Source: Kudoa neothunni (taxonomy: Eukaryota > Animalia > Cnidaria). From it: DNA of 64,000 bases. The notes beneath the pieces are model-generated. The model did not search any database. It was not told where the DNA came from and worked only from the letters and a program-made list of their open reading frames with translations. The position numbers were made by a program, and so were the translations under genes. This document shows, in pieces, positions 29,616-64,000 of this stretch (the first letter of the stretch is position 1; every line of letters begins with the position of its first letter). The stretch spans positions 7,522,966 through 7,586,965 of the forward strand of contig OZ199839.1 of NCBI GenBank assembly GCA_964304625.1, read 5' to 3'.

Positions 29616-31765
29616 CGCTCGAACACCTGTGAAATAAAGTTACACGAATACGTGAACAGGACCGCAGTGTTCCTGTGCTATTTTCTTCCAATATAGTTGG
29701 AATCATAGCTCCTAACCCATAGATCTAAAGTCATCGACCTTTGTCTTTTTATTGTGATGCAATATATTTTCAAAAAATTAATATTAATATATTGTTGAGA
29801 ATTATATTAATGCTCGCCACATCAATAAAGAAATACCGCAAGTAAATTCACATTAAAATTTTCTATTATTATTATTATTTTATATCCGTAATGATTCTTG
29901 TATTGATCGAAATTCGCTGCCAGAAACGGGTTGCCAATTACTTTAAAACACTTTTTTTTAAAAGAAAACTAAATATAATCAAAGTAACCGAAAATAACTT
30001 AAACTCTCCTTTTTACCAACTTAACCCTTCAAACGTTAATTTATTTATATACATAAAAATCAAAATGTCTAACAAAACAAGACAAAAATTTCAATTATAG
30101 AATGAATATGTTTTAGTTGCAATGGCATGTATCACATTCTACAATATTAGTTCGGTGGCTTTCACAAACATACTGTTGGCGTTATGTACAATATATTCTA
30201 ATTCTTTTCTTTTCACCTATCGAACAAATGCGACACAAACTTCTTCCGGAAAAATATTCTGTTTTTAGTCTGGATTGATTTGGCAGTATCGTCATCTCCA
30301 AATAACTCTTCAACAAGCATTTTCAAGAATTTTCTTCTTGATCGCTTTTTATTAGCTTCATGGAATTGAGGATTTCTATTAATATACAAAAGATAAGCAT
30401 TGTAACCAGCTATATCAATTATATTGAAAAAAATTGCCAACGACGAGTAGCTCGCTTGGTGGAATAGCAACGGATAATACGGTCTAGACTCTAGAGTATC
30501 GACGCTACCTTTGGTTGAATTGTAATACATTATAATTTCAGGCTTTTTGGTCTCCTTGTTTATCGAAATGTTTTGATGTTGAGAGCTTAAAATAACTACC
30601 GATTTGTTTTTTTCCCGGTTGAACTTTACCAGAGTAAATTTGTCCTGAAAAAGAAATTTGATTTCATTTACAGTACCCTTTGGTGATTGGAATGGGGAAA
30701 AAGAAATTTTTTATTTTTTCTTACTGTTCCAAAAATAGTAGTCTTATTTGAAATAAGGTACCTTGCCAATGTATATTTTTGCAATGCAGAGATACGCATT
30801 TGTTGCATCCCACAACTCCCAGATTTTAATTCCATACTAACCAGACTTTGAAGGAATAAACGTTTGAAGAAGTATCGTCCTCTAAATGTTACAAGAAGCT
30901 GATCAACAGTCAACTGAAAGGATGGGTCGTAACATTCCCCGCATGTCTTTATGGAGCAGTCAAAAATATGTTTAATTGGAGTTAATTTATCCGCGCGATT
31001 TCTGGATATCTTTTTTATTATGAATGATATACCATATTTTTCACTCCAGAACTCTCTAATATTCTCGTTCTTCCCTTTCATCATACCAATAAGTATGACT
31101 GCAGCCAAATAAATGTTGAGTTTTTCCAAATAAATTTTAATGTTGGATTTTTCTAGTTTTATGAACATATTTGTGCAATATACGGTGTTATCAAGTATAA
31201 AAAAGTCAAGAAATTAATAAATGCTCTCAATGAAGTCTATCCTAAAAGTCTTGCTTCTTTTGAAAATTCTGGTTTCTCCCTGTATATATTTTACTGCGTT
31301 ACTTTCCTTTTAATTCTTGTTGGAGTTCTATACTACTTTTCTCCGTCTTTTGACACGACACAGGAGATTTCTGAAGCATCTTGGATACTTTCGTCGCTGT
31401 CATTTATACATTTTAGTGTTCTTAGCTTAAATTATAATTTGTTATAAAATACTCAATTATATATAGGATTGGTCGTAAAACGTCGTTTCTAGAATTCAGT
31501 AATATTAATGGTGTTTCAAAAGTTGATTAGATCATTGGTTTCAGGTGGACCACTGCGGTCCTACTCAGGTAATAATGTAACTTTTTTTGTTTTTTCATTT
31601 GCACAAAAAGTTACCAAGTCTAAAAATCTAATATTTTAACATTTTATTTAGTAGGTTTACACAATAAAATACATTTAATTATAAATTAATAACTTATAAA
31701 ACTGAATAGATATTAAAGGTTTTTTTGCTAGTGGACCACAATGATCCACTCCAGGTATTCGAGGG
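29616..31765 (-). mobile_element. piggyBac element related to 14792-17481, internally deleted and decayed
   Basis: TTAA|CGCTCGAACACCTG ... CAGGTATTCGAGGG|TTAA; transposase fragments 30213-31168. Confidence 0.9.
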
Positions 31766-45415: not shown

Positions 45416-45488
45416 GGTTGTATGGTGTAATTGGTTAGCATTATGGACTTTGAATCCATCGACCCGAGTTCGAATCTCGGTACGGCCA
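45416..45488 (+). tRNA. tRNA-Gln(TTG), intact; 3' end is of element-A type
   Basis: Cloverleaf: acceptor GGTTGTA/TACGGCC (two G:U pairs), D arm GTGT..GCAT, anticodon stem ATGGA/TCCAT with TTG at 45450-45452, T arm CCGAG-TTCGAAT-CTCGG. A box TGGTGTAATTGG and B box present. Confidence 0.95.
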
Positions 45489-45494
45489 CTCCCT

Positions 45495-45507
45495 CTTTTG
45501 TTTTTTT
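45495..45507 (+). terminator. Pol III terminator-like T-runs
   Basis: CTTTTGTTTTTTT shortly after the discriminator base; repeated in every A unit; equivalent TTTTACATTTTT in the B unit. Confidence 0.7.
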
Positions 45508-45629
45508 GTGGTATTGTCTTTTTTTGGGCTATTTTTTGGCGTTTTTAGCGGCTGCCTTTTATCAGGAAAGTTAAAGTAAGTTCTTTTATTGTTGTTGCTA
45601 ACTTTTTAGGTACATACGACGGTTGGAAG

Positions 45630-48600
45630 ATGGAGAACACAACAGTTTTGTCGGAAAACTCCATTGACCATTTGAAAGACACGTGTCCCGAACTGACTCG
45701 AGTGATTTTGACCTACTTCCAGGCATGGGAGAAAGCCTCAATCAAACGAAGAAGGAAACCTCAACTTTGTATTAAAGCCAACGAAATCGTAAAGATTTCA
45801 AAGCTCATTTTCAAGGCTAAAAGCGACATTTCCGTTTTATGTCGGAACCGACCGAAGTTGCCAACTACAGAAAAAACGCCGAATTTTGAAGATACGGATT
45901 TTGTGGATATCTCGATTGAAGCAAATGATGTATCTTATTCAGATCGAGTCGCAATCCGAAAACTGCAGACAAATCTGTCCAGAAACAGACGAAGTCTCAA
46001 TTTTCTGTACGATGAGTTTATGACTCTAGTACAGAAAGCTGTAGATGACGCCGAGTTTCCAGCAGAGTTGTTGAATGTTGATGGATCTGTTGACATTTCA
46101 GCGGACCTCAAATTCTTCCCGGTTTTCCCGAATCAGCCACTTTTAATTAATGAAGCGCATGTCACAGAAAAGCGTGTGATGAAGGCCACTGCTAATGGTG
46201 AAATTATTATTGATGATTCGCCCAATGTTGTTCTAAGTGTTGAGAATGTTGTTGTTGTTCCTACTTCTCCAGAAGTGGTGAACTCAGCAAATTCTGCGAA
46301 TAATGAGACGACATTGGAGTTGCCCGCGCAGCCAATTTCGCCATTGTCGAGTTCATTGCATAGTTTGGACGTTAATTCAGTTAATTCAGCTAAATCAGTC
46401 ACTTTAACTAAATCTAATGTTAATTCTAAGTGCATTTCTAAAATTAAAAAAGTAAAAAACCCCATTCCGCATCTTTCAACTCCCGAATATGACCATTCTT
46501 TGCATAATAATAGGATTTTTAACTTAAATAATCAAACTTGTAGTGAAGCTCCTATTTTAATCGACGAGAATGTTAATATTTCCCCTTCCTTAAATCAAAA
46601 TTCACCCCAAAATCCATCAATTCCGGAAGAAAATGTTCAACCTAGCCTCATCGAACGGTCCAAAACCTTCTTTAGAGCGCCTAGTTTGTCGTTTAATTCC
46701 CCTTTGAAATCAGCTAATGTCTCCATTGGTGCGATGATGAATAACTTTTTAAATGGCATTGTTGCCACTTTATCAAGTCCCGAATCATCTCCGAAACCCT
46801 CTCAACCACAAAATGAAGATGATGAAGACAACGAAGAATACTTTGACTCGTTCGAAGAGCCAATGCAGATCCCCCATCTGGAAATTGCACTTCCTCTCTT
46901 GGATGTGGAAATGATGGATGACGCGGTCGAGCTGCGAAAGCCTCAAAAACGACGACATCAAGATATCTCCCCCTCGTCTTCTCCATCTCCATCTTCTTCA
47001 CCTTCCCCCTCAAAGCACCCTGACGATAACACCTCCAACGACTCCTCCAGTGAAGACTGTGCCCCTAAAAAGGCCCATCTGGCACCCATTACCAATTCCC
47101 AACCTCCGCCTTTGTCCCTAATTGTCTCACCTGATGAAAACTTTTTATCCTCTCAGGATATTACCAAATTCATCCGAGACGTTAGGAGAAAGACGCGCAG
47201 AAGAACCAAGAAACAAATCACCCCTAGACCGATGAGAATAACGAGATCTGCAGCAAAACTGCTCAGTTCTCAGTCTCAATCTCAAGAATCTCAACGTCCC
47301 CTTCCAACCCCGCCCAATCCACCTGCATTGGCACCCATCACTACTGTGGAAGTCATCTCATCACCCTCGAGACCCAGGTCTCCAAATCCTCCAACTCCCA
47401 ATCCAACCAAGAACGTGGCCTCTACACCGGAAGTTATCACCAACTCTCCATCTACTGCAACTACTGCACCTACTGCACCTACTGACGTGGCAAACAAATC
47501 ATTCTGCTTCGACCCAATCGACGAAAACAACCCACCAATCCTTGAATTCTCCAACATACCCATCCATAATGATGTTAATAGCAATATTAACAACGACGTC
47601 ATTATCCTCGACACGGCCACCACTACTGAAGATCATATTGAAAATCGCATTGAAGAGACTCATGATGATATTGATATTGATGTAGATGTAGAAATGCCCC
47701 TCAACTTTGAAAATCAACCCTTGAGAGAAGCAACCACCCAAGACGTCATGGAAGTGATGCGAGAACGAATTGGAAACAATTACGGACTCCCAGCTGCATC
47801 AGTTACTCCATCCAATCAACGTAACCCTTCTGACCCATCACCATCAAACGTCCACACAACTGACGATATAATCGACGATAACGACGACGTTAATGCTGAT
47901 CCACCCCAAGACGAGCAACCTCCTACCAACTTAAGTAAGTACCAATTGAGGAAATTAGAGGAGGAAAAGAAGCTCAAAGCTGCAGCGTCGATGATGAAGC
48001 ACTTGATCAATCATATAGGGTCCACTGCAACGTGTGACACCCTATATGCCCAATTTTTAGAGACCGCCATTGAGCATGCTAAAGAGCTCAAACTCCATCG
48101 AGTTCCCTTTACACGCCCCAATGACAATGACGCCGAAAATAGAGAAGCCAGCCCGTATGATGAGCACAATGTGGTGAGGAACAACAATCCGAATGACCCA
48201 AGCACTACTTTCGTACGAAGGATACAACGCCCCCTAACAAAGAGAGCCCACGAGAGGAGACTCCGTGGACTCTACCGCACCAATATGAAGCGTTGTTTCC
48301 ACGAAGTAGTGAATGACCCGCCAAAATGGTGCACTGCCTCTGCTACACAAATAACAGAAGCACTCACCCCTAATTTGTCCAATCCTCCACCAATTCCAGA
48401 AGAAGCTCCACCTCAAAACGCCTCTCCAATCCAGCAAGATGATGATAACGCTCCCATCCAATCCCAACGAGACATCTATGATTTCCAGCGGAACTACTCA
48501 GACATCCACATCTCCCCCGAAGACGTTCTTTGTGCGCTTGAAAAAGCAAACAAAGACACAGCAGTTGGAACCGATGGTATCCAAATGACATTTTGGAAAC

Positions 48601-50876
48601 GTCTTCCACAAATAGAGTTTGTGCTAGCCCCGCTATTTAACTGCTTCATCCGTACAAGCACCATCCCTCAAAGTTGGTTGGAATCAAGACTGGTCTTAAT
48701 TCCCAAATCGAAGGATGCAGACAGCACTGACCCCCTGAATTACCGCCCGATTGCGATAACTCAAACAATCTACCGATTGTTCATGAGTTGTCTTAACAGA
48801 AAACTCAGACCCCTCATCCAACTGTCTCCATCTCAGAAAGGATTTATACAAAGCGATGGCTGTGTCGAACACGCCTTCACCCTACAAGAAATCCTGGATG
48901 ACTCTCGCCGACGCCAGTCAAAAATCAACGCTGTTTGGATCGATATTCAAAAAGCGTTCGATTCGGTACCCCACAACTTTATCCTCCACCATCTACGTCA
49001 ACAGAAAGTTCCTTCAAACATTGTCCAACTCATTGCCAATCTCTACGACAACAGTTACAGTCTGGTGACTGACAAAGACGGCAACAACTCCACAATCAAC
49101 CCCAACGGCCGTGGCGTGAGGCAGGGATGCCCCCTGTCTCCGCTACTCTTCAATTTAGTGATTGACCCCCTTCTGGAAGATATTGCCAACAGTGGAATCG
49201 GCTACCCCCTCAGAGGACACAATATTGGTGCTCAATGCTTCGCAGATGATCTTGTCCTTCTAGCCAACAACGACGGAGATATGGATACCCTTTTGAAGAA
49301 AACCGAAGATTTCCTATCCAAAACCTCCCTGACCGTCAACCACTCCAAGTGCGCGAGCCTTAAAGTAAGTTACATTCAAGGTAGAAGATTCATCAACACC
49401 GTCTCCACAAACTCACCTACGCTTTTTGGAATCCACGTGCCCCCGATGCAAAACTACTACAAATATCTTGGCACCCAATCCAACCTTCAATCCTTCAAGA
49501 ACCTCCCACCTGCTTTTGACGACTTTATTATGAAATTGACAAAAATCTCAAATTCTCCCCTTCTTCCCTTCCAAAAATTAAATCTCCTCAAGATATACGT
49601 ATTCCCGAGCATCGACCACGTAATGAAGAATACCCTGCTCCGAATTGAAGACCTTGCCAAGATTGATGCCCTCATCTTACGAAATGTTCGCCAATGGCTC
49701 AATCTTCCAAACTCCTCAACGAAGAACATCTTCTACATCCCCAACTGTGCTGGAGGACTTGGCTTGAAACAGCTTACGAAGGACTATGCCGCCTTACGGC
49801 TGGCCGCTGGTCTGAATCTGCTGAATTCCAAGGATGAAACCATCCAACTTGTAGCAAGACAGTCCCTTCAAGAAATCTGTGCCAAACGAAGCAACCACTC
49901 CATGGATCCACTCACCTATCTTCATCTGGATGAAGAACCTTGCGTGTCTCGAGACATTCGAAGTCTTATGTCTTCAATGCGTTTGAACCGCAAATCAATC
50001 AAAGTGGACCTCCTCCAACCTTCTGAAGATCTAAACCACATGGAGATTGACGACGAAAGTCTCAATCCTCCCATTTTCCCTCCAAAAAATCCAACTTTCC
50101 AACCCACCCGCATCAAGAAGCTCCGTTGGCACCTACAATCCAACCATCTCCGTCTACTCAAGGCCCAAGTAGACCAAGGACGCTCCGCTGGCTGTTTTAG
50201 TCAACACGCTGAATCCAACTCGTGGACCCGAACCGGTAATATAAAAATTTCATCATTTAGGTTCGGTCTCATGGGTAGAATTAACGTGCTCCCGACAATG
50301 ACAGTGCTACACCGTGCCCAATCTACGCTTGATACACAATGCCGCCGATGTTCGTGCCAAGTGGAAACACTTGGACACATTCTGAATGGCTGTCCAAACA
50401 ACAGAAACGAGATCATCCTTCGCCACAACTCAATTTTAGAATTCATCGCCTCCAAAATCAAGGTTGGAAAAAAGTATGAACTCCTGATCGACCGATTATT
50501 CCCCGATGGTGTCCTAATTGGCGACCGACGACCAGACATCCAACTTATCCACCGCCGCTCCAAGACGATAATCGTAGCTGACGTCTCCGTCTGCTATGAA
50601 TCATCCCTACAACGCATGGACGAGGTAAGAGAGCACAAAATCCGGAAATACGCCGACGAGTTTGCTCTACTTGAACAAGCTGGCTGGAAGATTCTCCCAA
50701 CTGCGCTCATCTTTGGATCCCTCGGCTCTCACCACCCGCTCAATTCCCAGGCTTACACCCTCCTCCACATTCAAAACCAGAAGAGAGTGAAAACCTTGAT
50801 GAAAAACATCACAACCAATCTGATCGAAAGTTCCCACATGATTTGGAATAATCATGTGAGAACGACTAGATCCTAA
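45630..50876 (+). CDS. 1748-aa retrotransposon protein (RT, CCHC knuckle, restriction-like endonuclease)
   Basis: AVGTDGI, NYRPIAI, QKGF, WIDIQKAFDSVPH, GVRQGCPLSPLLFN, FADD, YKYLG, GGLG, CRRC..VETLGHILNGC, RHN, RPD, ADV, KIRKY. Confidence 0.97.
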   Translation: MENTTVLSENSIDHLKDTCPELTRVILTYFQAWEKASIKRRRKPQLCIKANEIVKISKLIFKAKSDISVLCRNRPKLPTTEKTPNFEDTDFVDISIEANDVSYSDRVAIRKLQTNLSRNRRSLNFLYDEFMTLVQKAVDDAEFPAELLNVDGSVDISADLKFFPVFPNQPLLINEAHVTEKRVMKATANGEIIIDDSPNVVLSVENVVVVPTSPEVVNSANSANNETTLELPAQPISPLSSSLHSLDVNSVNSAKSVTLTKSNVNSKCISKIKKVKNPIPHLSTPEYDHSLHNNRIFNLNNQTCSEAPILIDENVNISPSLNQNSPQNPSIPEENVQPSLIERSKTFFRAPSLSFNSPLKSANVSIGAMMNNFLNGIVATLSSPESSPKPSQPQNEDDEDNEEYFDSFEEPMQIPHLEIALPLLDVEMMDDAVELRKPQKRRHQDISPSSSPSPSSSPSPSKHPDDNTSNDSSSEDCAPKKAHLAPITNSQPPPLSLIVSPDENFLSSQDITKFIRDVRRKTRRRTKKQITPRPMRITRSAAKLLSSQSQSQESQRPLPTPPNPPALAPITTVEVISSPSRPRSPNPPTPNPTKNVASTPEVITNSPSTATTAPTAPTDVANKSFCFDPIDENNPPILEFSNIPIHNDVNSNINNDVIILDTATTTEDHIENRIEETHDDIDIDVDVEMPLNFENQPLREATTQDVMEVMRERIGNNYGLPAASVTPSNQRNPSDPSPSNVHTTDDIIDDNDDVNADPPQDEQPPTNLSKYQLRKLEEEKKLKAAASMMKHLINHIGSTATCDTLYAQFLETAIEHAKELKLHRVPFTRPNDNDAENREASPYDEHNVVRNNNPNDPSTTFVRRIQRPLTKRAHERRLRGLYRTNMKRCFHEVVNDPPKWCTASATQITEALTPNLSNPPPIPEEAPPQNASPIQQDDDNAPIQSQRDIYDFQRNYSDIHISPEDVLCALEKANKDTAVGTDGIQMTFWKRLPQIEFVLAPLFNCFIRTSTIPQSWLESRLVLIPKSKDADSTDPLNYRPIAITQTIYRLFMSCLNRKLRPLIQLSPSQKGFIQSDGCVEHAFTLQEILDDSRRRQSKINAVWIDIQKAFDSVPHNFILHHLRQQKVPSNIVQLIANLYDNSYSLVTDKDGNNSTINPNGRGVRQGCPLSPLLFNLVIDPLLEDIANSGIGYPLRGHNIGAQCFADDLVLLANNDGDMDTLLKKTEDFLSKTSLTVNHSKCASLKVSYIQGRRFINTVSTNSPTLFGIHVPPMQNYYKYLGTQSNLQSFKNLPPAFDDFIMKLTKISNSPLLPFQKLNLLKIYVFPSIDHVMKNTLLRIEDLAKIDALILRNVRQWLNLPNSSTKNIFYIPNCAGGLGLKQLTKDYAALRLAAGLNLLNSKDETIQLVARQSLQEICAKRSNHSMDPLTYLHLDEEPCVSRDIRSLMSSMRLNRKSIKVDLLQPSEDLNHMEIDDESLNPPIFPPKNPTFQPTRIKKLRWHLQSNHLRLLKAQVDQGRSAGCFSQHAESNSWTRTGNIKISSFRFGLMGRINVLPTMTVLHRAQSTLDTQCRRCSCQVETLGHILNGCPNNRNEIILRHNSILEFIASKIKVGKKYELLIDRLFPDGVLIGDRRPDIQLIHRRSKTIIVADVSVCYESSLQRMDEVREHKIRKYADEFALLEQAGWKILPTALIFGSLGSHHPLNSQAYTLLHIQNQKRVKTLMKNITTNLIESSHMIWNNHVRTTRS

Positions 50877-51047
50877 CAAAATTATCAAATCTTCCTACTT
50901 CATCGTGCATCTGCTGATTCCAATATCCATCCATCCATCCATCAATATGTCCACCATTCCAATCTACACAAATCAACATTAGTTTAGTTAGTCTAGTCAC
51001 TAAAAGTAACTTATTTATTAATCACGATAGCATTCGTTAGTTTTCGG

Positions 51048-51083
51048 AATCCATCGACCCGAGTTCGAATCTCGGTACGGCCA
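51048..51083 (+). repeat. 3' half of tRNA-Gln, A-type acceptor TACGGCCA
   Basis: Identical to 45453-45488; no 5' half upstream. Confidence 0.95.
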
Positions 51084-51224
51084 CTCCCTCTTTTGTTTTT
51101 TTGTGGTATTGTCTTTTTTTGGGCTATTTTTTGGCGTTTTTAGCGGCTGCCTTTTATCAGGAAAGTTAAAGTAAGTTCTTTTATTGTTGTTGCTAACTTT
51201 TTAGGTACATACGACGGTTGGAAG

Positions 51225-54200
51225 ATGGAGAACACAACAGTTTTGTCGGAAAACTCCATTGACCATTTGAAAGACACGTGTCCCGAACTGACTCGAGTGA
51301 TTTTGACCTACTTCCAGGCATGGGAGAAAGCCTCAATCAAACGAAGAAGGAAACCTCAACTTTGTATTAAAGCCAACGAAATCGTAAAGATTTCAAAGCT
51401 CATTTTCAAGGCTAAAAGCGACATTTCCGTTTTATGTCGGAACCGACCGAAGTTGCCAACTACAGAAAAAACGCCGAATTTTGAAGATACGGATTTTGTG
51501 GATATCTCGATTGAAGCAAATGATGTATCTTATTCAGATCGAGTCGCAATCCGAAAACTGCAGACAAATCTGTCCAGAAACAGACGAAGTCTCAATTTTC
51601 TGTACGATGAGTTTATGACTCTAGTACAGAAAGCTGTAGATGACGCCGAGTTTCCAGCAGAGTTGTTGAATGTTGATGGATCTGTTGACATTTCAGCGGA
51701 CCTCAAATTCTTCCCGGTTTTCCCGAATCAGCCACTTTTAATTAATGAAGCGCATGTCACAGAAAAGCGTGTGATGAAGGCCACTGCTAATGGTGAAATT
51801 ATTATTGATGATTCGCCCAATGTTGTTCTAAGTGTTGAGAATGTTGTTGTTGTTCCTACTTCTCCAGAAGTGGTGAACTCAGCAAATTCTGCGAATAATG
51901 AGACGACATTGGAGTTGCCCGCGCAGCCAATTTCGCCATTGTCGAGTTCATTGCATAGTTTGGACGTTAATTCAGTTAATTCAGCTAAATCAGTCACTTT
52001 AACTAAATCTAATGTTAATTCTAAGTGCATTTCTAAAATTAAAAAAGTAAAAAACCCCATTCCGCATCTTTCAACTCCCGAATATGACCATTCTTTGCAT
52101 AATAATAGGATTTTTAACTTAAATAATCAAACTTGTAGTGAAGCTCCTATTTTAATCGACGAGAATGTTAATATTTCCCCTTCCTTAAATCAAAATTCAC
52201 CCCAAAATCCATCAATTCCGGAAGAAAATGTTCAACCTAGCCTCATCGAACGGTCCAAAACCTTCTTTAGAGCGCCTAGTTTGTCGTTTAATTCCCCTTT
52301 GAAATCAGCTAATGTCTCCATTGGTGCGATGATGAATAACTTTTTAAATGGCATTGTTGCCACTTTATCAAGTCCCGAATCATCTCCGAAACCCTCTCAA
52401 CCACAAAATGAAGATGATGAAGACAACGAAGAATACTTTGACTCGTTCGAAGAGCCAATGCAGATCCCCCATCTGGAAATTGCACTTCCTCTCTTGGATG
52501 TGGAAATGATGGATGACGCGGTCGAGCTGCGAAAGCCTCAAAAACGACGACATCAAGATATCTCCCCCTCGTCTTCTCCATCTCCATCTTCTTCACCTTC
52601 CCCCTCAAAGCACCCTGACGATAACACCTCCAACGACTCCTCCAGTGAAGACTGTGCCCCTAAAAAGGCCCATCTGGCACCCATTACCAATTCCCAACCT
52701 CCGCCTTTGTCCCTAATTGTCTCACCTGATGAAAACTTTTTATCCTCTCAGGATATTACCAAATTCATCCGAGACGTTAGGAGAAAGACGCGCAGAAGAA
52801 CCAAGAAACAAATCACCCCTAGACCGATGAGAATAACGAGATCTGCAGCAAAACTGCTCAGTTCTCAGTCTCAATCTCAAGAATCTCAACGTCCCCTTCC
52901 AACCCCGCCCAATCCACCTGCATTGGCACCCATCACTACTGTGGAAGTCATCTCATCACCCTCGAGACCCAGGTCTCCAAATCCTCCAACTCCCAATCCA
53001 ACCAAGAACGTGGCCTCTACACCGGAAGTTATCACCAACTCTCCATCTACTGCAACTACTGCACCTACTGCACCTACTGACGTGGCAAACAAATCATTCT
53101 GCTTCGACCCAATCGACGAAAACAACCCACCAATCCTTGAATTCTCCAACATACCCATCCATAATGATGTTAATAGCAATATTAACAACGACGTCATTAT
53201 CCTCGACACGGCCACCACTACTGAAGATCATATTGAAAATCGCATTGAAGAGACTCATGATGATATTGATATTGATGTAGATGTAGAAATGCCCCTCAAC
53301 TTTGAAAATCAACCCTTGAGAGAAGCAACCACCCAAGACGTCATGGAAGTGATGCGAGAACGAATTGGAAACAATTACGGACTCCCAGCTGCATCAGTTA
53401 CTCCATCCAATCAACGTAACCCTTCTGACCCATCACCATCAAACGTCCACACAACTGACGATATAATCGACGATAACGACGACGTTAATGCTGATCCACC
53501 CCAAGACGAGCAACCTCCTACCAACTTAAGTAAGTACCAATTGAGGAAATTAGAGGAGGAAAAGAAGCTCAAAGCTGCAGCGTCGATGATGAAGCACTTG
53601 ATCAATCATATAGGGTCCACTGCAACGTGTGACACCCTATATGCCCAATTTTTAGAGACCGCCATTGAGCATGCTAAAGAGCTCAAACTCCATCGAGTTC
53701 CCTTTACACGCCCCAATGACAATGACGCCGAAAATAGAGAAGCCAGCCCGTATGATGAGCACAATGTGGTGAGGAACAACAATCCGAATGACCCAAGCAC
53801 TACTTTCGTACGAAGGATACAACGCCCCCTAACAAAGAGAGCCCACGAGAGGAGACTCCGTGGACTCTACCGCACCAATATGAAGCGTTGTTTCCACGAA
53901 GTAGTGAATGACCCGCCAAAATGGTGCACTGCCTCTGCTACACAAATAACAGAAGCACTCACCCCTAATTTGTCCAATCCTCCACCAATTCCAGAAGAAG
54001 CTCCACCTCAAAACGCCTCTCCAATCCAGCAAGATGATGATAACGCTCCCATCCAATCCCAACGAGACATCTATGATTTCCAGCGGAACTACTCAGACAT
54101 CCACATCTCCCCCGAAGACGTTCTTTGTGCGCTTGAAAAAGCAAACAAAGACACAGCAGTTGGAACCGATGGTATCCAAATGACATTTTGGAAACGTCTT

Positions 54201-56471: not shown

Positions 56472-56642
56472 CAAAATTATCAAATCTTCCTACTTCATCG
56501 TGCATCTGCTGATTCCAATATCCATCCATCCATCCATCAATATGTCCACCATTCCAATCTACACAAATCAACATTAGTTTAGTTAGTCTAGTCACTAAAA
56601 GTAACTTATTTATTAATCACGATAGCATTCGTTAGTTTTCGG

Positions 56643-56678
56643 AATCCATCGACCCGAGTTCGAATCTCGGTACAACCA
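56643..56678 (+). repeat. 3' half of tRNA-Gln, B-type acceptor TACAACCA
   Basis: Differs from A-type at two acceptor bases; perfectly complementary to GGTTGTA at 45416. Confidence 0.95.
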
Positions 56679-56819
56679 CTTCCATTTTACATTTTTGGAA
56701 CTATTGTCTTTTTTGCGGCTATTTTTTGGCGTTTGTTGCGGCTGAATTATATTTAGGAAGCTAAAGTAAGTTTTTTTCTTGTTGTGGTTAATTTTTTAGG
56801 AAATTCCTACCGTGGGAAG

Positions 56820-59800
56820 ATGCCGAATTCAACGAATATTACTGAAAACTCCAACAACCATACTGCAACCGCATGCGCCGAAGTGTCACGAACTGTTTTA
56901 ACCTACTTCCAGGCTTGGGAAGTAGCCAAAATTAAACGTACACGTAGGCCCAAACTATGTGGAAAAGCACGCGAAATCGTTAAAATGATAGAGCGCATTA
57001 ACACCGTCAAAATTGAAATTTCCGATCTATGTCGCCATGGCCCGAATTCGGAAAATTTGCCAAATGTTGAAAACTTGGAAACTGCTCTATCTACCGTCAA
57101 TCCTGATATTCCGTTAGATGTAATTAATGATACTAAGGCTGCAGTTAAAAAATTACGGGCAAAGATGTGGCGGAACAAGCGTAGTCTTGGATTAATGTAT
57201 GAGGACTTTATATCCTTAATACAAGAATCTGTTGACAACGATGAATTCCCTGCTGAATTGTTTAATGAAGATGGGTCTGTTGATATATCAAAAGATCTCA
57301 AATTCTTTCCAGTTAAAGCTAACCAACCAAATCTCCTAGAATCGGACATTGTTAACTCAAAGCGCATTTTTAAAGCAGATTCAAGTGGCAAATTTGTGAA
57401 TGTAGATTGTCCTAGTGATGTTCTTAATGATGTTAATAATTCTGGTCCATCAGCTACTCCAGTAGTTGAGAAATCAGCAATTATTGAAGATTCCCGAACG
57501 ACATCAAACATGCCCGCGCATCCCAATCCGCCATTACAAAGTTCCTTGCATAGCTCCTTTACTAGACCAGTTAACAATCCGGTTCCTGCGCCTAATCTTA
57601 ACTCTAATTTACCTCCTTCATCTAGTTTAATTCATTCTAATCTTAATTCTAACCTTAGCGCTAAAAACCCTAATTCCAATTATTTAAATAATCCATCTAG
57701 CTCCCTTAATCCTTCAAATTTTAAAACTATTCCTTCTAATAATTCTGATACTATTAATTCCCAATCTATTTCTAATTCTAGCTCTAAACTTAACGCCACG
57801 CTTAACTCTAAAACTAACAAATTAACCAATTCTAGTTCTAATACTAAAATTAACATTCCTTCCAATATTGCGCCAACTTATGATCATTCCTTGAATAGTA
57901 ATAAGATTTTTAACACTTTAAACAATCCTTCTCTTAATGCCAAAAACAACAACATGCCCAGAAATTCTAAAAAAAAACTCTCTGAAGTGTCGTCCGAACA
58001 CTCACACTCTGCGGGTCTTAACCCTCCTCTTGAAGAAAATCAAGAACCCCTGCTGAAAGATAGGTCCAAAACCTTCTTCAAAGCTCCCCCTTCATCCAAA
58101 AACAAGATTAACATGTCCGTTGGCCAAATGATGAATGATTTCCTCAACGATGTTGCTACTGCTTCGATTCCAGACCAGAGCAATCATTGTTCCAATCTTA
58201 ACAGTTTGCTTGAAGTTGAAATCCCCTTAATCGATATGATGAATGATGACACCAACACAAAACTTCCCACTAAACGTAAACATCATTCAATCTCTCTCAA
58301 CAATAATGTGGACAACCATCAACATTGTAAATCAGCTCCTGAAGATTGTACTCAAGATTTTTCACCCAAGAAAACCAGATTCTCTCTGGACAAGTCTCCA
58401 TTCTCATCACCTCCCTTTTCTTCCAAAATTCCACGACTTTCCCTAATTAAATCCCCTAAAGAATTTCAAATTGCCTCACAAGAAATTAATGACTTTATAA
58501 GAATGGCAAAAGCGAAATCCTTTATTGGGAATAATTCGAAGAAACCAAAATCCACAAGAAATCCACCAAATCGTAACAACACTTCCTCTCCAATGGTTAT
58601 TCCCTCTACATCCCTTCGTCCGCAAACACAAGAAGCTCCCATCACAATTTTGTCCTCTCCCTCTTCTCCGATTAAAGCCCCCGAAGAAAGTCCCATGCAA
58701 GAATTCCTTTATTTCAGCCTAGATGAAAGTGAACACAATGGAAATCCCAACATATCACAACAATCCTTTGTATTCGACCCTATCGATGCAACTTCCCAAC
58801 CTAACCTCAATTTCTCTCTTCTCAATACATCTAATATTGTTGAAGATGAATTCCCCAAAGAAAATCCAGCTAAATTGAATCAACATGAAGTTCCTCAAGA
58901 AGAAAATACTGGACTAAGAACCGTTACCACCCAGGATGTTATGGTGGTCATGCGTGATCGTATTGGCAACAATTATGGTCTCCCTGATCTCCATAGCATT
59001 ACCCCAAACGATGACACAGTTCTACAAAACTCAATTTGTGATCCTGCTCCCTCAAACGCCCACCATAACGCTCCTCCTACTTTCAACAACACTGTCCACG
59101 AGCAATCACAAATAGATCAAGAAGATGCCCAAGATAGAGAACCTTCTAACCTCAACAAATACCAAAAGAGGAAGCTTGAAGAGGAAAAGAAACTAAAGGC
59201 AGCCGCAACAATGATGAAACATCTGTTAAATCATATTGGTTCAAACCAATCTTGCGACGCACTCTACGAAACTTTTCTTTCTTCCGCTATTGAACATGCT
59301 AAGAATCTTAACATGCACCGAATGCCCTTCACTCGCCCTAATGATAATTCGCCCGAAAATCGAGATGAGAACCCCTACAACGAACATAACGTAGTGCGAA
59401 ACAACAACCCCGCCGATCCAAGCCCGACGTTTGTTAGACGAATTCAACGTCCTCTAACAAAAAGTGCCCATGAAAGAAGGCTTCGTGGCTTGTATAGAAC
59501 GAACATGAAGCGCTGTTTCCATGAAATAGTCCAAGATCCTCCCAGATGGTGCACTGCTTCTGCCGACCAAATAGCAGAGTCATTTGCATCCATCTCATCC
59601 ATTCCACCACCTATCATCGACGACGAACCTCTCCCATCTCCTCTCAATTCGAATGCTCCATCACAACATTCACAGATTCAAGACAAAGATCACCAACCAG
59701 GAAAACATTTAGCAGACGATATCTACAACTTTGACATTAACTATTCTGATTTCCATATTTCGCCCGAAGATGTCCTCTTTTCAATAGAGAAAGCCAATAA

Positions 59801-62123
59801 GGACACTGCTGTGGGAACCGACGGTATCCAAATGACCTTTTGGAAACGGTTACCCCAAATTGAATTCGTTCTGGCTCCGCTCTTCAACTACATCCTTCGT
59901 ACGAGTACCATCCCCAAAAGTTGGCTCGAATCAAGACTGGTGCTACTACCCAAATCCAAAGACGCAGCGACTGATAACCCCACTAATTACCGCCCGATCT
60001 CAATCACTCAAACAGTCTACCGATTGTTCATGAGCTGCTTGAATCGAAAACTCCGCCCGATGATAAAGTTATCTCCTGCTCAGAAAGGCTTCATTCAAAG
60101 TGATGGATGTGTCGAACATGCTTTCACTTTACAAGAAATCCTGGACGACTCAAGACGTCATCTCTCCAAAATCAATGCTGTCTGGATAGACATTCAAAAA
60201 GCATTTGATTCTGTCCCACACAATCGTATCATCCACCAACTCCGTCGCCATCACATCCCAACCAACATCGTCAACCTAATTTCCAACCTGCATGAAGGTT
60301 CCTTCAACATCGCAACAGATAAAGAAGGAAACACCTCCAATATCCATCTCAACGGCCGAGGCGTGAGACAAGGTTGTCCCCTGTCTCCCCTCCTTTTCAA
60401 TATGGTTATCGACCCTCTTCTCGATGAGATCGTTAACGGTGGTATTGGCTACCCACTCCGTGGGCAGAACATTGGTGTTCAGTGCTTTGCTGATGACTTG
60501 GTCCTACTAGCGAAGACACCTACAGATATGGATTCCCTCCTAAGAACTGCTGAAGACTTCTTTACGAAAACTTCGTTAACTGTCAACCATTCCAAATGTG
60601 CTAGTCTCAAAGTTAGTTATCTATATAGCAGAAGAGTCATCAACAACCAACTGTCCAACTCACCTCAACTTTTTGGTACCCACATCCCCCCAATGAAGAA
60701 CCACTACAAATATCTTGGAACTCAATCAAATTTACAATCTTTTAAAGACCTTCCACCTGCTTTCGACGATTTCACTCAAAAATTGAAGAAAATCTCCAAC
60801 TCCCCACTCTTCCCATTCCAAAAGATCAATCTTCTCAAGATATATGTAACACCAATGCTAGACCACGTAATGAAGAATACTATCCTCCGTATTGATGATC
60901 TGGCCAAAATTGATGCCCTAATTTTACGCAATGTTCGTCAGTGGCTCAATTTACCCAACTCCTGCACGAAGCATGTATTCTACCTTCCCAATTCTGCTGG
61001 TGGACTCGGCTTAAGACAACTCACCAAGGATTATGCTGCCTTGAGATTAGCCGCTGGGCTCAATCTGTTGAACTCTGCCGATGAACCCATCCAAAAAGTT
61101 GCCCGTCTGTCTCTGGAAGAAATTTGTAATAAGAGGACCAAGAACTCCATGGACCCGTTAACATACCTCCACTTGGATGAAGAACCCTGCGTTTCTCGCG
61201 ATATCAGAAGCCTCTTGTCCTCTATGCGTCTGAATCGCAAATCTATCAAAGTCGACCTTTGCCAACCTTCCGATGATCCCAATCATATGGACATCGATGA
61301 TGAATCCCTCAACCCACCAATTTTTCCACCCAAGAACCCAACCTTCCGTCCCACTCGTATCAAGAAGCTACGATGGCACCTTCAAGCATCCCACCTCAAC
61401 CTCCTCAAAAACCAACCTGACCAAGGACGCTCCGCTGGCTGCTTCAGTCAACACCACGAATCGAACTCATGGACCAGAACCGGTAACATAAAAATATCTT
61501 CTTTTAGGTTCGGTCTCATGGGTAGAGTCAACGTGCTCCCGACTATGACAGTCCTCCATCGCGCCAAATCCACACTCGACACATCCTGCCGCCGTTGCTC
61601 ATGCCAGGTGGAAACACTTGGACACATTTTGAACGGCTGCCCCAACAACAAAAATGAGATAATTCTTCGCCACAACAACGTCCTGGAGACAATTGCCTCT
61701 AAAATCAAAGTGGGCAAGAAGTACGACCTCAAAATTGACCAACTCTTCCCCAATGGTGTCCTTATCGGCGACCGAAGACCCGACATCCAACTCATCCACC
61801 AACGCTCCAAGACCATCATCGTAGCCGACGTCTCCATATGCTACGAATCTTCTGTGACCCGTATGAACGAGGTAAGGGATCATAAGATCCGAAAATACGC
61901 AGATGAGTTTGCCCTGCTTGAACAAGCGGGCTGGAAAGTCCTACCGACTGCCCTCATCTATGGTTCCCTCGGCTCCCACCACCCCCTCAACTCTCAGGCC
62001 TACACCCTTCTCCACATTCAAAACGAGAAGAAAGTGAAGACCCTTATGAAAAACATCACCTCCAACCTGATCGAAAGTTCTCACATGATTTGGAATAATC
62101 ATGTGAGAACGACTAGATCGTGA
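56820..62123 (+). CDS. 1767-aa RT-RLE protein, family B
   Basis: ATG 56820 is in the same GGAAGATG context and at the same 177-nt offset as in A; all catalytic motifs intact. Confidence 0.93.
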   Translation: MPNSTNITENSNNHTATACAEVSRTVLTYFQAWEVAKIKRTRRPKLCGKAREIVKMIERINTVKIEISDLCRHGPNSENLPNVENLETALSTVNPDIPLDVINDTKAAVKKLRAKMWRNKRSLGLMYEDFISLIQESVDNDEFPAELFNEDGSVDISKDLKFFPVKANQPNLLESDIVNSKRIFKADSSGKFVNVDCPSDVLNDVNNSGPSATPVVEKSAIIEDSRTTSNMPAHPNPPLQSSLHSSFTRPVNNPVPAPNLNSNLPPSSSLIHSNLNSNLSAKNPNSNYLNNPSSSLNPSNFKTIPSNNSDTINSQSISNSSSKLNATLNSKTNKLTNSSSNTKINIPSNIAPTYDHSLNSNKIFNTLNNPSLNAKNNNMPRNSKKKLSEVSSEHSHSAGLNPPLEENQEPLLKDRSKTFFKAPPSSKNKINMSVGQMMNDFLNDVATASIPDQSNHCSNLNSLLEVEIPLIDMMNDDTNTKLPTKRKHHSISLNNNVDNHQHCKSAPEDCTQDFSPKKTRFSLDKSPFSSPPFSSKIPRLSLIKSPKEFQIASQEINDFIRMAKAKSFIGNNSKKPKSTRNPPNRNNTSSPMVIPSTSLRPQTQEAPITILSSPSSPIKAPEESPMQEFLYFSLDESEHNGNPNISQQSFVFDPIDATSQPNLNFSLLNTSNIVEDEFPKENPAKLNQHEVPQEENTGLRTVTTQDVMVVMRDRIGNNYGLPDLHSITPNDDTVLQNSICDPAPSNAHHNAPPTFNNTVHEQSQIDQEDAQDREPSNLNKYQKRKLEEEKKLKAAATMMKHLLNHIGSNQSCDALYETFLSSAIEHAKNLNMHRMPFTRPNDNSPENRDENPYNEHNVVRNNNPADPSPTFVRRIQRPLTKSAHERRLRGLYRTNMKRCFHEIVQDPPRWCTASADQIAESFASISSIPPPIIDDEPLPSPLNSNAPSQHSQIQDKDHQPGKHLADDIYNFDINYSDFHISPEDVLFSIEKANKDTAVGTDGIQMTFWKRLPQIEFVLAPLFNYILRTSTIPKSWLESRLVLLPKSKDAATDNPTNYRPISITQTVYRLFMSCLNRKLRPMIKLSPAQKGFIQSDGCVEHAFTLQEILDDSRRHLSKINAVWIDIQKAFDSVPHNRIIHQLRRHHIPTNIVNLISNLHEGSFNIATDKEGNTSNIHLNGRGVRQGCPLSPLLFNMVIDPLLDEIVNGGIGYPLRGQNIGVQCFADDLVLLAKTPTDMDSLLRTAEDFFTKTSLTVNHSKCASLKVSYLYSRRVINNQLSNSPQLFGTHIPPMKNHYKYLGTQSNLQSFKDLPPAFDDFTQKLKKISNSPLFPFQKINLLKIYVTPMLDHVMKNTILRIDDLAKIDALILRNVRQWLNLPNSCTKHVFYLPNSAGGLGLRQLTKDYAALRLAAGLNLLNSADEPIQKVARLSLEEICNKRTKNSMDPLTYLHLDEEPCVSRDIRSLLSSMRLNRKSIKVDLCQPSDDPNHMDIDDESLNPPIFPPKNPTFRPTRIKKLRWHLQASHLNLLKNQPDQGRSAGCFSQHHESNSWTRTGNIKISSFRFGLMGRVNVLPTMTVLHRAKSTLDTSCRRCSCQVETLGHILNGCPNNKNEIILRHNNVLETIASKIKVGKKYDLKIDQLFPNGVLIGDRRPDIQLIHQRSKTIIVADVSICYESSVTRMNEVRDHKIRKYADEFALLEQAGWKVLPTALIYGSLGSHHPLNSQAYTLLHIQNEKKVKTLMKNITSNLIESSHMIWNNHVRTTRS

Positions 62124-62349
62124 TTGTCCTAATTGTTCTTATCCAACCCTCGACAACAACCTCATTCCATTGATGATACGAGATGATGATATGATGATAA
62201 CCTCCAAAAATCCACCTTCAACTTCCACCACCAAATTTCCACATCCATCCATTCTATGCTACTGTCCATTTCCAAATTTCTACATCCAAGCCAACTTCCT
62301 AAAAACTATATTAGATCATATACACATTAGCATAGATTAATTTTCGGTA

Positions 62350-62385
62350 AATCCATCGACCCGAGTTCGAATCTCGGTACGGCCA
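62350..62385 (+). repeat. 3' half of tRNA-Gln, A-type
   Basis: Identical to 45453-45488. Confidence 0.95.
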
Positions 62386-64000
62386 CTCCCTCTTTTGTTT
62401 TTTTGTGGTATTGTCTTTTTTTGGGCTATTTTTTGGCGTTTTTTAGCGGCTGCCTTTTATCAGGAAAGTTAAAGTAAGTTCTTTTATTGTTGTTGCTAAC
62501 TTTTTAGGTACATACGACGGTTGGAAGATGGAGAACACAACAGTTTTGTCGGAAAACTCCATTGACCATTTGAAAGACACGTGTCCCGAACTGACTCGAG
62601 TGATTTTGACCTACTTCCAGGCATGGGAGAAAGCCTCAATCAAACGAAGAAGGAAACCTCAACTTTGTATTAAAGCCAACGAAATCGTAAAGATTTCAAA
62701 GCTCATTTTCAAGGCTAAAAGCGACATTTCCGTTTTATGTCGGAACCGACCGAAGTTGCCAACTACAGAAAAAACGCCGAATTTTGAAGATACGGATTTT
62801 GTGGATATCTCGATTGAAGCAAATGATGTATCTTATTCAGATCGAGTCGCAATCCGAAAACTGCAGACAAATCTGTCCAGAAACAGACGAAGTCTCAATT
62901 TTCTGTACGATGAGTTTATGACTCTAGTACAGAAAGCTGTAGATGACGCCGAGTTTCCAGCAGAGTTGTTGAATGTTGATGGATCTGTTGACATTTCAGC
63001 GGACCTCAAATTCTTCCCGGTTTTCCCGAATCAGCCACTTTTAATTAATGAAGCGCATGTCACAGAAAAGCGTGTGATGAAGGCCACTGCTAATGGTGAA
63101 ATTATTATTGATGATTCGCCCAATGTTGTTCTAAGTGTTGAGAATGTTGTTGTTGTTCCTACTTCTCCAGAAGTGGTGAACTCAGCAAATTCTGCGAATA
63201 ATGAGACGACATTGGAGTTGCCCGCGCAGCCAATTTCGCCATTGTCGAGTTCATTGCATAGTTTGGACGTTAATTCAGTTAATTCAGCTAAATCAGTCAC
63301 TTTAACTAAATCTAATGTTAATTCTAAGTGCATTTCTAAAATTAAAAAGTAAAAAACCCCATTCCGCATCTTTCAACTCCCGAATATGACCATTCTTTGC
63401 ATAATAATAGGATTTTTAACTTAAATAATCAAACTTGTAGTGAAGCTCCTATTTTAATCGACGAGAATGTTAATATTTCCCCTTCCTTAAATCAAAATTC
63501 ACCCCAAAATCCATCAATTCCGGAAGAAAATGTTCAACCTAGCCTCATCGAACGGTCCAAAACCTTCTTTAGAGCGCCTAGTTTGTCGTTTAATTCCCCT
63601 TTGAAATCAGCTAATGTCTCCATTGGTGCGATGATGAATAACTTTTTAAATGGCATTGTTGCCACTTTATCAAGTCCCGAATCATCTCCGAAACCCTCTC
63701 AACCACAAAATGAAGATGATGAAGACAACGAAGAATACTTTGACTCGTTCGAAGAGCCAATGCAGATCCCCCATCTGGAAATTGCACTTCCTCTCTTGGA
63801 TGTGGAAATGATGGATGACGCGGTCGAGCTGCGAAAGCCTCAAAAACGACGACATCAAGATATCTCCCCCTCGTCTTCTCCATCTCCATCTTCTTCACCT
63901 TCCCCCTCAAAGCACCCTGACGATAACACCTCCAACGACTCCTCCAGTGAAGACTGTGCCCCTAAAAAGGCCCATCTGGCACCCATTACCAATTCCCAAC
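62350..64000 (+). mobile_element. Family A, copy 3 (runs off the window); ORF from 62528 frameshifted near 63344-63348
   Basis: Matches copy 1 except A5 instead of A6 at 63344-63348 and one extra T in the 5' UTR. Confidence 0.93.

Follow-up and report, generated by a model that had tools for sequence, protein, structure and literature searches.

Site-specific non-LTR retrotransposons are thought to persist by targeting multicopy genes and destroying the copies that they hit. R2 disrupts its copy of the 28S gene and depends on there being hundreds of them; Pol I transcribes it together with its target, an HDV-like ribozyme excises it, and its protein has N-terminal ZF/Myb domains. Some R2 RNAs also retain target-derived end sequence, which aids junction formation. 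Elements of the NeSL/Utopia clade have zinc-finger DNA-binding motifs at the N terminus. SLACS and CZAR make a 49-bp duplication that leaves an intact mini-exon upstream. tRNA genes attract DNA elements as well: Dada is a DNA transposon that disrupts multicopy tRNA genes, while the attP sites of phages, ICEs and archaeal viruses carry the 3' part of a tRNA gene, and integration leaves a functional gene behind.

Utopia elements are RLE non-LTR retrotransposons, related to NeSL, that are specific for U2 snRNA genes (Kojima & Jurka 2015, PMC4640811). In Phytophthora, intact U2 genes lie upstream of Utopia elements, and U2 sequence without nucleotides 1-38 lies downstream; the authors attributed the intact upstream genes to deletion of a 5' fragment or to recombination, and did not propose regeneration (PMC4640811). 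The same paper, in the part that lists specificities, names three tRNA-specific RLE families of the NeSL clade: NeSL-1_TV (tRNA-Pro), LIN15_SM (tRNA-Arg) and LIN25_SM (tRNA-Glu). SLACS and CZAR insert between nucleotides 11 and 12 of the mini-exon (PMC5814959), and the target duplication of R9 of bdelloid rotifers is called 'exceptionally long' in a title cited in PMC3636483. The 3'UTR of R2 contains 28S-like stretches (PMC5035012). Several Dada groups insert around the anticodon (PMC8869645), and Dictyostelium TRE5/TRE3 and yeast Ty3 insert outside the tRNA gene through binding of Pol III factors (PMC5006619). tRNA-specific NeSL-type elements and long target-site duplications are, in short, already known. 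A literature search found no description of an RLE element that regenerates its target.

A tRNA-Gln gene at the head of a tandem array

The window (the whole 64,000-nucleotide stretch of Kudoa neothunni DNA that was analysed) contains an array of repeated elements, all on the + strand, headed by a tRNA gene. The original prediction, an intact tRNA-Gln(TTG) at 45416-45488 leading straight into the first element, agrees with ARAGORN and with Rfam (RF00005, 63.4 bits), both of which call a single tRNA-Gln(ttg) at 45416-45488/9. Up to its anticodon (to about 45451/2) this head gene, tRNA-Gln(UUG), is unique host DNA, and its remainder is the first 36 nt of the first unit, E1; the repeat unit begins at 45452/3, right after the anticodon, with one G assignable to either side. 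A short-read unitig from a public run bridges the unique flank into the head tRNA. Genome-wide, the head gene is the sole full-length BLAST match and the only tRNA-like match to a pattern that spans anticodon to T loop with the canonical UUG (a 13-nt pattern for counting copies was dropped as too noisy), and it appears to be the only tRNA-Gln(UUG) gene of the genome.

The element-linked 3' half of the tRNA (45453-45488) comprises the 3' side of the anticodon loop, the variable loop, the T arm with its B box, the 3' strand of the acceptor stem and the discriminator. Runs of T4 and T7, 8-19 nt past the tRNA end (45496-45507), are the putative Pol III terminator of the head tRNA, and the trailer that follows a tRNA half is family-specific. 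At acceptor positions 69-70, A-type halves have GG and B-type halves AA; both pair with the 5' strand of the head gene, the former by wobble and the latter by Watson-Crick pairs. The 5' part of the head gene makes a valid tRNA-Gln with any of the element-linked halves (9/9), the acceptor pairs being compensated. The claim that a complete tRNA stays upstream after insertion is borne out to this extent, as a prediction from sequence: the head tRNA is full-length and every half fits its 5' part.

Nine units stand head to tail behind the head tRNA. They occupy about 46 kb and extend 27 kb beyond the window, to about C2:7614660. Each unit opens with the tRNA 3' half from just after the anticodon; the T-run terminator comes next, then a 5'UTR and then a single ORF that encodes about 1750 aa. 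The unit spacings are 5595, 5595 and 5708 nt. Three junctions, at 51047/8, 56642/3 and 62349/50, had been predicted to join an element end to the post-anticodon half, and at each of them the same 36-nt tRNA 3' half abuts the element's 3' end. Six junctions, if that at 62350 is counted with them, continue the array, the other five lying at C2 7588976, 7594571, 7600206, 7605252 and 7613492. The junction of 3'UTR and tRNA half is bridged by short-read unitigs from a public run, in which a read depth of about 27 on the element and 4.6 on the flank suggests about six A-type copies. The tandem array itself is confirmed, and it is larger than first described.

The units belong to several families. 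E1 (45453-51047; family A; 5595 nt, bounded by direct repeats) contains the tRNA 3' half, terminator, 5'UTR, ORF and 3'UTR. E2 (51048-56642; family A; ORF 51225-56471) is identical to it; when the units are taken to begin at the tRNA half, E1, E2 and E5, the last outside the window, match at 100% throughout their 5595 nt. E3 (56643-62349; 5707 nt) is of family B, with its own acceptor-end and trailer variant and an intact ORF of 1767 aa that runs from an ATG at 56820 to 62123; its protein is 57% identical to that of family A overall and 83% identical in the RT-endonuclease part. E4 (62350-64000), again of family A, is cut by the window end, where a 200-N assembly gap begins exactly; it differs from E1 by two 1-nt indels in 1651 nt, one of which disrupts the reading frame after 274 codons. 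Families B and C have remained intact; decay is seen in the distal units, among which an internal deletion fuses two elements. Intact, identical copies adjoin the tRNA and the broken copies are distal.

The original prediction proposed looking past the end of the array for a last tRNA 3' half followed by host DNA. This was not found: the oldest unit stops after about 350 codons, and AT-rich host DNA comes next. The loci L046, L047 and L049 do end in a tRNA half, followed by sequence without the 5'UTR motif.

The array might in principle have arisen from a single chance insertion in the tRNA-Gln gene that unequal crossing-over or tandem duplication then multiplied. Amplification would account for the 100% identity of three units, and recombination does act in the array, as its mosaic 5' ends and the fusing deletion attest. 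As a sole cause this is very improbable. At least four families (57-84% identical) are interleaved within the array, decay grows with distance from the head, a second organism likewise has two adjacent families, and the same architecture is found at 16 tRNA genes of differing identity. At least three intact families at one site, together with decay that rises with distance from the tRNA, fit repeated insertion at a regenerated head and not one duplicated insertion, and the prediction was right to see more than tandem duplication here. Unequal crossing-over or tandem duplication probably contributes to the turnover of the array.

The element and its protein

The 5'UTR of E1 contains a 34-nt intron-like segment (45576-45609; GTAAGT ... 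CTAAC ... TTTTTAG), whose two ends are conserved throughout the Gln-family units and also in the second organism. It is a candidate intron, and the transcript is possibly spliced for translation. Some host introns in the window carry TCTAAC near their 3' AG.

The single ORF of E1 (45630-50876) encodes 1748 aa. A helical N-terminal domain, conserved in the family, is followed by a low-complexity middle and then by an RT (about 48702-49382, with FADD at 49239-49250), a CCHC motif (50340-50393) and the endonuclease motifs PD (50526-50546), D (50574-50591) and K (50634-50651); the motifs read CRRC..GHILNGC, RRPD, VADV and KIRKY. Pfam matches RVT_1 (E 8.8e-34) and, weakly, zf-RVT, and the RT and endonuclease parts align in the same order to solved R2 proteins in the PDB (E 5e-62 and E 3e-12). 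By these matches, the elements are RLE non-LTR retrotransposons of the R2 group, with RT, then CCHC, then a PD-(D/E)XK endonuclease, which is the class originally assigned to them. LTRs are absent, the sole repeats being whole units. The 3'UTR of E1 (50877-51047) abuts the next tRNA half and has no poly(A) or simple-repeat tail.

Residues 1-1000 have no Pfam match even at E up to 5 and no recognisable DNA-binding domain, ZF or Myb; AlphaFold models the N-terminal domain as long helices (pLDDT 66), for which Foldseek finds nothing in the PDB below E = 1. An R2-like 5' ribozyme was considered and rejected, since Rfam at E up to 1 identifies no family besides tRNA, and hence no ribozyme family, in the element. 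Mimicry of the tRNA 5' part by the element's 3' end was likewise rejected: 9-91% of shuffled sequences equal the local alignment score.

The geometry of the product is exactly that of attP x attB recombination in tRNA genes, with an intact gene on one side and an orphan 3' part on the other, and one may ask whether a circular or linear DNA copy of the element integrates by homologous or site-specific crossing over within the shared tRNA 3' half. The mosaic 5' regions described below suggest some role for homology. The elements, however, encode no integrase or recombinase; their only ORF is an RT-CCHC-endonuclease of the type that uses target-primed reverse transcription. Their 3' junction, moreover, is sequence-specific and precise, the eight junctions here and those of at least 10 other families starting at the same place in a tRNA. 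That the 3' boundary falls at a single, sharply defined nucleotide position whichever the family also speaks against such recombination, which we consider most unlikely.

Which sequence travels with the element

That the 5' end of the element supplies the 3' end of the tRNA together with its terminator was the central claim of the original prediction. It stands for the segment from tRNA position 69 to the terminator; a short target-site duplication could instead account for the invariant segment 37/38-68. Between families, the acceptor-stem end and the T-run terminator differ, and they vary with the element downstream of them; the element must accordingly supply at least position 69 to terminator. 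At junction J3, a B-type acceptor end and trailer precede a B body; at J4, after that B body, acceptor end and trailer are A-type and precede an A body. In the array at 1.0 Mb on C2, the 5'UTR type likewise matches the body after it. The linkage of trailer and body is not absolute: E8 joins a B-like trailer to an A-like 5'UTR and E6 an A-type 5'UTR to a C body, so that 5' ends are mosaic.

An acceptor end and terminator that travel with the downstream element argue against a target-site duplication that extends beyond tRNA position 68, as well as against 3' transduction. In the first of these alternatives, the top-strand cut would lie some 35-60 bp downstream of the nick in the bottom strand; an element without tRNA sequence of its own would at each insertion gain the tRNA 3' half, perhaps together with the trailer, as a copy of the target, and the upstream tRNA would also be left intact. 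Staggered cuts with duplications have been reported for CRE, R4, R8 and R9 (PMC3636483), and a 20-bp duplication for reptile Utopia (PMC4640811). Here, tRNA positions 37/38-68 (31 nt) are invariant in junctions J1-J8, the different families of a Lys-like array have the tRNA half and the first 16-18 nt of trailer in common, and the trailers of A, B and J9 are of nearly equal length (23-24 nt) before the conserved 5'UTR block, all of which favours duplication. But a duplication equalises both flanks, and from tRNA position 69 onwards the left flank of each of the intact elements E2 and E3 departs from the right one at about a dozen positions. In the second organism, the two flanks of an intact element (L058) diverge from the very first base of the trailer. 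The flanks of these three elements are identical only within 37/38-68 (or 37/38-73), which limits duplication to the inner 31-36 nt of the half at most. A-type junctions, unlike the two flanks of E2 or E3, show 100% identity among themselves. Successive duplications from the head would, in addition, need at least three A/B/A flips of the trailer, and hence recombination between two long-lived haplotypes. We think it rather unlikely, though worth serious consideration, that duplication provides all of the tRNA sequence; a hybrid, in which 37/38-68 is duplicated and position 69 onwards is borne by the element, is possible.

In 3' transduction, the element would insert in the tRNA terminator and its RNA would read through the next half and trailer, so that the half ends the preceding unit. 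The phase of a unit in a tandem array is ambiguous, and the T runs after the half could end such a transcript. Yet the otherwise identical E1 and E2 would then end A-type and B-type, respectively, and the B copy would end A-type; at the head, the repeat begins right after the anticodon and not after the tRNA. The ORF contains 21 T4+ runs where 13.5 +/- 3.2 are expected, which is chance level, and Pol III termination therefore cannot set the end. This alternative is hardly credible.

Other tRNA genes, a second organism and relatives

Genome-wide, 16 of 19 related RT clusters, linked to tRNA genes by their coordinates, have an intact tRNA gene 1.7-5 kb upstream on the same strand, and the 16 genes differ in identity. 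Where elements elsewhere in the genome are readable, their 3' ends abut the 3' halves of other tRNAs. At the tRNA-Gln(CUG) locus on C1 there is a separate, related lineage with a CUG-type half. The contig of the second organism has the same layout, with two families side by side, and its elements carry that organism's own, different tRNA-Gln acceptor end.

In an RT tree built without labelled NeSL-1, R4, Hero or CRE references, the tRNA-linked elements all fall together in a single clade with an SH-aLRT of 100. Its sister group (99) is mixed and includes two U2-flanked elements, a Ciona sequence and spider sequences annotated as R2. By sequence, the closest outside relatives are U2-specific Utopia elements, with about 30% identity over RT plus endonuclease.

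Regeneration of the target gene: a model

The reading of the original prediction, a tRNA-targeting element that rebuilds its target gene, is supported. As a whole, the observations are best explained, and we think probably correctly, by site-specific RLE elements that carry a tRNA 3' half and terminator and thereby regenerate the gene into which they insert. Such elements would form a lineage-specific clade adjoining the U2-specific Utopia, and each would have a single tRNA gene as its target, at the 3' side of the anticodon loop. At its 5' end the element would reproduce the tRNA sequence that begins directly behind the anticodon and runs to the discriminator, with a Pol III terminator after it. 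The endonuclease would nick the bottom strand at about position 36/37-37/38, and reverse transcription primed at the nick would set the 3' end of the element against the old tRNA 3' half; once the cDNA reached the 5' end of the RNA, the element-borne half would be joined to the untouched 5' half, a step that homology between the two tRNA halves may aid. The product would be an intact, chimeric tRNA gene with its terminator upstream and an orphan 3' half downstream. Since the regenerated gene would be a fresh target, the locus would grow from its head as a layered array in which several families compete.

The RNA template would presumably be a Pol II transcript that starts either at the tRNA half or upstream of it. 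That Pol III transcribes the element in full was considered and rejected: the many T runs in the element body, which are not avoided in the ORF, exclude Pol III as the source of full-length RNA. Three metatranscriptome runs lacking the organism contained 0, 0 and 2 matching reads.

The element appears to repair the damage that it does, which would remove target depletion and harm to the host together and explain its persistence in a genome whose tRNA genes may be single-copy. Many of these genes look single-copy; if they are, regeneration makes them usable targets. An array that grows from its head and is ordered in time would be a natural archive of how families have competed at a single nucleotide position. 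The acceptor stem and terminator of host tRNA genes would be retrotransposon-derived and repeatedly renewed, an unusual form of host-parasite co-evolution. An enzyme with RT and endonuclease activity that restores the tRNA gene after placing kilobases at a defined position in it would also be relevant to current R2-based insertion tools.

A wider proposal is put forward tentatively, its chances being somewhat below even: that at least 16 tRNA genes of this compact genome, the apparently sole tRNA-Gln(UUG) gene among them, are permanently chimeric, with a host 5' half and a co-evolving 3' half and terminator rewritten by retrotransposons at each insertion, and that regeneration is general in the NeSL/Utopia branch. 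If that is true, target regeneration is a strategy of that whole branch, so far unrecognised. Retrotransposons could then inhabit genes that are both essential and single-copy, and the match between the carried and the resident half would dictate the choice of target.

Comparison with known systems

Dada, TRE5/TRE3 and Ty3 resemble the present elements in using tRNA genes as safe sites. The attP-bearing elements share the geometry of the product but are prokaryotic DNA elements that use tyrosine or serine recombinases, with no reverse transcription and no head-growing arrays. R2 has the same domain order and class of mechanism, and it is the R2 proteins of the PDB that match the RT and endonuclease; the R2 clade proper differs in its 28S target, its ZF/Myb domains and its HDV-like ribozyme, whereas the elements described here target tRNA genes and neither ZF/Myb nor ribozyme was found in them. 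R9 and CRE/SLACS/CZAR are also of the R2 group, and their insertion duplicates a long piece of target. In those elements, however, the duplication is target-derived and the whole gene and terminator are not restored, whereas here the flanks of single elements are unequal. For NeSL-1_TV, LIN15_SM and LIN25_SM the comparison is by description, and the passage that describes them states specificity alone, with no insertion position, element-borne half or intact upstream gene.

Utopia comes closest. It has one ORF, an RLE and a precise 3' junction in a small RNA gene, and it too occurs in arrays; it differs in its target, U2 and not tRNA, and the tRNA-linked elements, unlike NeSL and Utopia as described, have no detectable zinc finger. 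Two of the Utopia relatives, whose sequences were examined, are flanked by U2 genes. One Utopia-like array (L062) departs from the pattern in having only about 20 nt of U2 between its elements. At locus L061, the U2 gene at the head is complete and the internal copies start at about nucleotide 39; all three are followed by identical sequence, which is the architecture of the tRNA-Gln array. The puzzle of intact U2 genes beside Utopia can be read anew in terms of target regeneration, which, if general in that branch, would explain those that lie upstream of the oomycete elements.

The tRNA-Gln(UUG) array

The Kudoa neothunni assembly (40.3 Mb in four contigs, with the window on contig 2) is AT-rich, at ~29% G+C. 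In the window G+C rises to 43-47% from 45.4 kb onward, with a strong C-over-G skew. The sole tRNA found there by ARAGORN and Rfam is tRNA-Gln(UUG) at 45416-45488. Three ORF fragments upstream of the array that match a piggyBac-type transposase (DDE_Tnp_1_7; 9157-9612 (+), 15807-16298 (-) and 30668-31168 (-)) look like decayed DNA transposons. A GDP-mannose pyrophosphorylase-like NTP_transferase gene at ~22300-23660 (-) has introns of 50-85 nt, one of which carries TTCTAACAG at its 3' end.

The repeat starts at 45452/3, inside the intact tRNA gene and directly 3' of its anticodon. The direct repeats place the same start at 51047/8, 56642/3 and 62349/50, each element end lying against a tRNA 3' half, as was originally observed. 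Each unit consists of a 36-nt tRNA 3' half, T runs (T4 and T7, 8-19 nt past the tRNA end), a 5'UTR in which a 34-nt intron-like piece is conserved, a single ORF (1748-1767 aa), and a tail-less 3'UTR of ~170-230 nt that abuts the next half.

When the chromosome beyond the window is included, the array has nine junctions across ~46 kb. Of its units, numbered E1 to E9 from the intact head tRNA, E1, E2 and E5 belong to family A and are 100% identical across 5595 nt; E4, also of family A, has two 1-nt indels and is interrupted by a 200-N gap. E3 (family B) and E6 (family C) have intact ORFs, E6 being 83-84% identical to A in the RT-endonuclease region and 57-60% overall. E7-E9 are increasingly broken: an internal deletion in E8 fuses two elements, and E9 is truncated after ~350 codons, with host-composition DNA beyond. 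Thus, young copies adjoin the tRNA and old copies are distal. The joins of flank to tRNA and of 3'UTR to half recur in unitigs from a public run, which confirms them; unitig depth suggests ~6 family-A copies. The gap in E4 (contig 2, 7586966-7587165) lies directly past the window end; read depth suggests that it hides ~2 additional family-A copies.

The encoded protein

The ORF product matches RVT_1 (Pfam, E 9e-34) and its C-terminus combines a CCHC motif with the PD...D...K signature typical of restriction-like endonucleases (RLEs). Solved R2 proteins align to its RT (E 5e-62) and CCHC-endonuclease (E 3e-12) in conserved order. These features bear out the identification of the elements as RLE non-LTR retrotransposons. 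Residues 1-1000 have no match in Pfam. A conserved N-terminal domain of ~170 residues is helical by structure prediction; a search for structural matches to it found none.

Which unit owns the tRNA half?

Three arrangements yield one and the same tandem picture: the half may open the element downstream of it (as its 5' end), close the element upstream of it (as its 3' end), or be a target-site duplication. A-type and B-type junctions are identical through tRNA position 68, differ at positions 69-70 (GG in A-type and AA in B-type, either of which pairs with the head 5' strand), and differ at ~10 positions of the trailer that follows the tRNA end. The B body is preceded by a B-type junction, the junction after it is A-type and stands ahead of an A body, and identical A copies are followed by an A-type junction in one case and a B-type junction in the other. 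Junction type therefore tracks the following body, and 3' transduction, in which the half would close the upstream element, is rejected. A target-site duplication extending past position 68 would equalize both flanks of one element. The A/B flanks differ from position 69 on, however, and those of an intact element of a second organism (L058, an ENA contig outside the source genome) diverge from the first trailer base, so that such a duplication is likewise rejected. In the array at 1.0 Mb on contig 2 it is also the body downstream that the 5'UTR type matches. The linkage of junction type to the following body implies that elements carry at least the acceptor-stem end, the discriminator and the terminator. 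To that extent the original prediction, that the element 5' end supplies the tRNA 3' end and terminator, stands; positions 37/38-68 are invariant, so that RNA templating and a 31-nt duplication are indistinguishable there.

The 5' ends of E8 (B-like trailer, A-like 5'UTR) and E6 (A-type 5'UTR, C body) are mosaic, which shows recombination or template switching; judged from these mosaics, homology of the carried and resident halves may aid formation of the 5' junction.

When the head 5' part is joined to each of the nine halves, ARAGORN calls tRNA-Gln in 9/9 cases. BLAST and an anticodon-to-T-loop pattern, short of a full census, found one tRNA-Gln(UUG) gene. On contig 1, tRNA-Gln(CUG) stands at the head of a degenerate relative of its own, whose 3' junction bears a CUG-type half with a different acceptor strand.

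Transcription and the intron-like piece

T runs occur in the element body at the frequency expected by chance, and Pol III therefore cannot make the full RNA. A search of the element for a ribozyme found none. The intron-like piece (GTAAGT...TTTTTAG, 33-40 nt) lies at 45576-45609 in the window, has an equivalent in every unit of the families in tRNA-Gln arrays (Gln families), and is also present in the second organism (L058:120-155 and ~5150-5190). It is similar to introns of the host, where TCTAAC in some cases stands near the AG. Since DNA copies retain the piece, we infer that the template RNA would be unspliced.

Other tRNA genes of the genome

An RT-endonuclease query has 66 matches in the genome, in 19 clusters, the intact ones at 43-52% identity. 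Sixteen of the 38 high-scoring genes in an Rfam tRNA scan sit 1.7-5 kb upstream of an RT cluster on the same strand, the position expected of a head, against a chance expectation far below one. At the loci that were read, at least ten further families have 3' ends lying against 3' halves of other tRNAs; set against eukaryotic consensus tRNAs, two of these halves look like Phe and Cys, with the join at 37/38. The tRNA-linked pattern is genuine and widespread in this genome. Three clusters (contig 1, 3000792-3002412; contig 2, 1818838-1820559 and 7764705-7775132) have none of the 38 scored tRNA genes at their head; the tRNA may be unscored, or the head lost.

The non-Gln families share a TTGTATWATTA-like 3'-terminal motif. 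They also have a conserved 5'UTR motif, TCTAACGRT, which lies 55-95 nt past the tRNA end in loci L033, L034, L036, L038, L039, L041, L043, L045 and L052, usually with an AG within the next 8-35 nt and in some cases within an inverted repeat; it may act as a branch point/acceptor or bind a protein. In the contig 2 array at 1007366-1035955, two RT lineages with no sister relationship in the tree (L036-L038 and L043, L051) end against one tRNA half, which suggests a switch of target or convergent use of a single tRNA gene. In the Lys-like array (L038 and L043, minus strand) an open frame runs from an ATG in the tRNA T stem via the 5'UTR into the ORF (298 codons in L038 and 421 in L043), which may be chance.

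Relatives and known systems

A search of 5.8 billion proteins gave just two close matches (82% and 66%), both encoded in a single ENA assembly; no other protein exceeds 31%. One of the contigs that encode them, L058, has the architecture of the window array (half, trailer, intron-like piece, ORF, 3' end, half, then a second family), but its tRNA-Gln half has a different acceptor end. In the tree, the second organism's two proteins nest in different Gln lineages of this genome, and these lineages are therefore older than the split of the two organisms. At L059:3540-3590 (ENA ERZ795007 contig) an element stop codon runs directly into the 3' part of the next element's intron-like piece; missing are the 3'UTR, the tRNA half, the trailer and most of the 5'UTR, either through deletion or because the assembly is chimeric here.

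The original reading is supported in its main points. A literature search found no account of target regeneration by an element-borne gene part, and a 2026 review of R2 diversity leaves tRNA targets unmentioned. The families listed by Kojima and Jurka (2015; PMC4640811) include NeSL-type elements specific for tRNA-Pro, tRNA-Arg and tRNA-Glu, and the long duplications on record include those of R9, CRE, R4 and R8 (PMC3636483). An intact U2 upstream of Phytophthora Utopia was attributed to deletion or recombination (Kojima and Jurka, 2015; PMC4640811). The next relatives are flanked by U2 snRNA genes, which identifies them as Utopia elements. In one Utopia-like array from an unrelated organism (L061, ENA ERZ25070530 contig; U2 at 334-519, 3338-3517 and 8485-8664), the U2 at the head is full-length, those inside the array begin at about nt 39, and all three are followed by identical sequence. 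Judged by its sequence, this is the regenerating architecture of the tRNA arrays, with U2 as the target gene instead.
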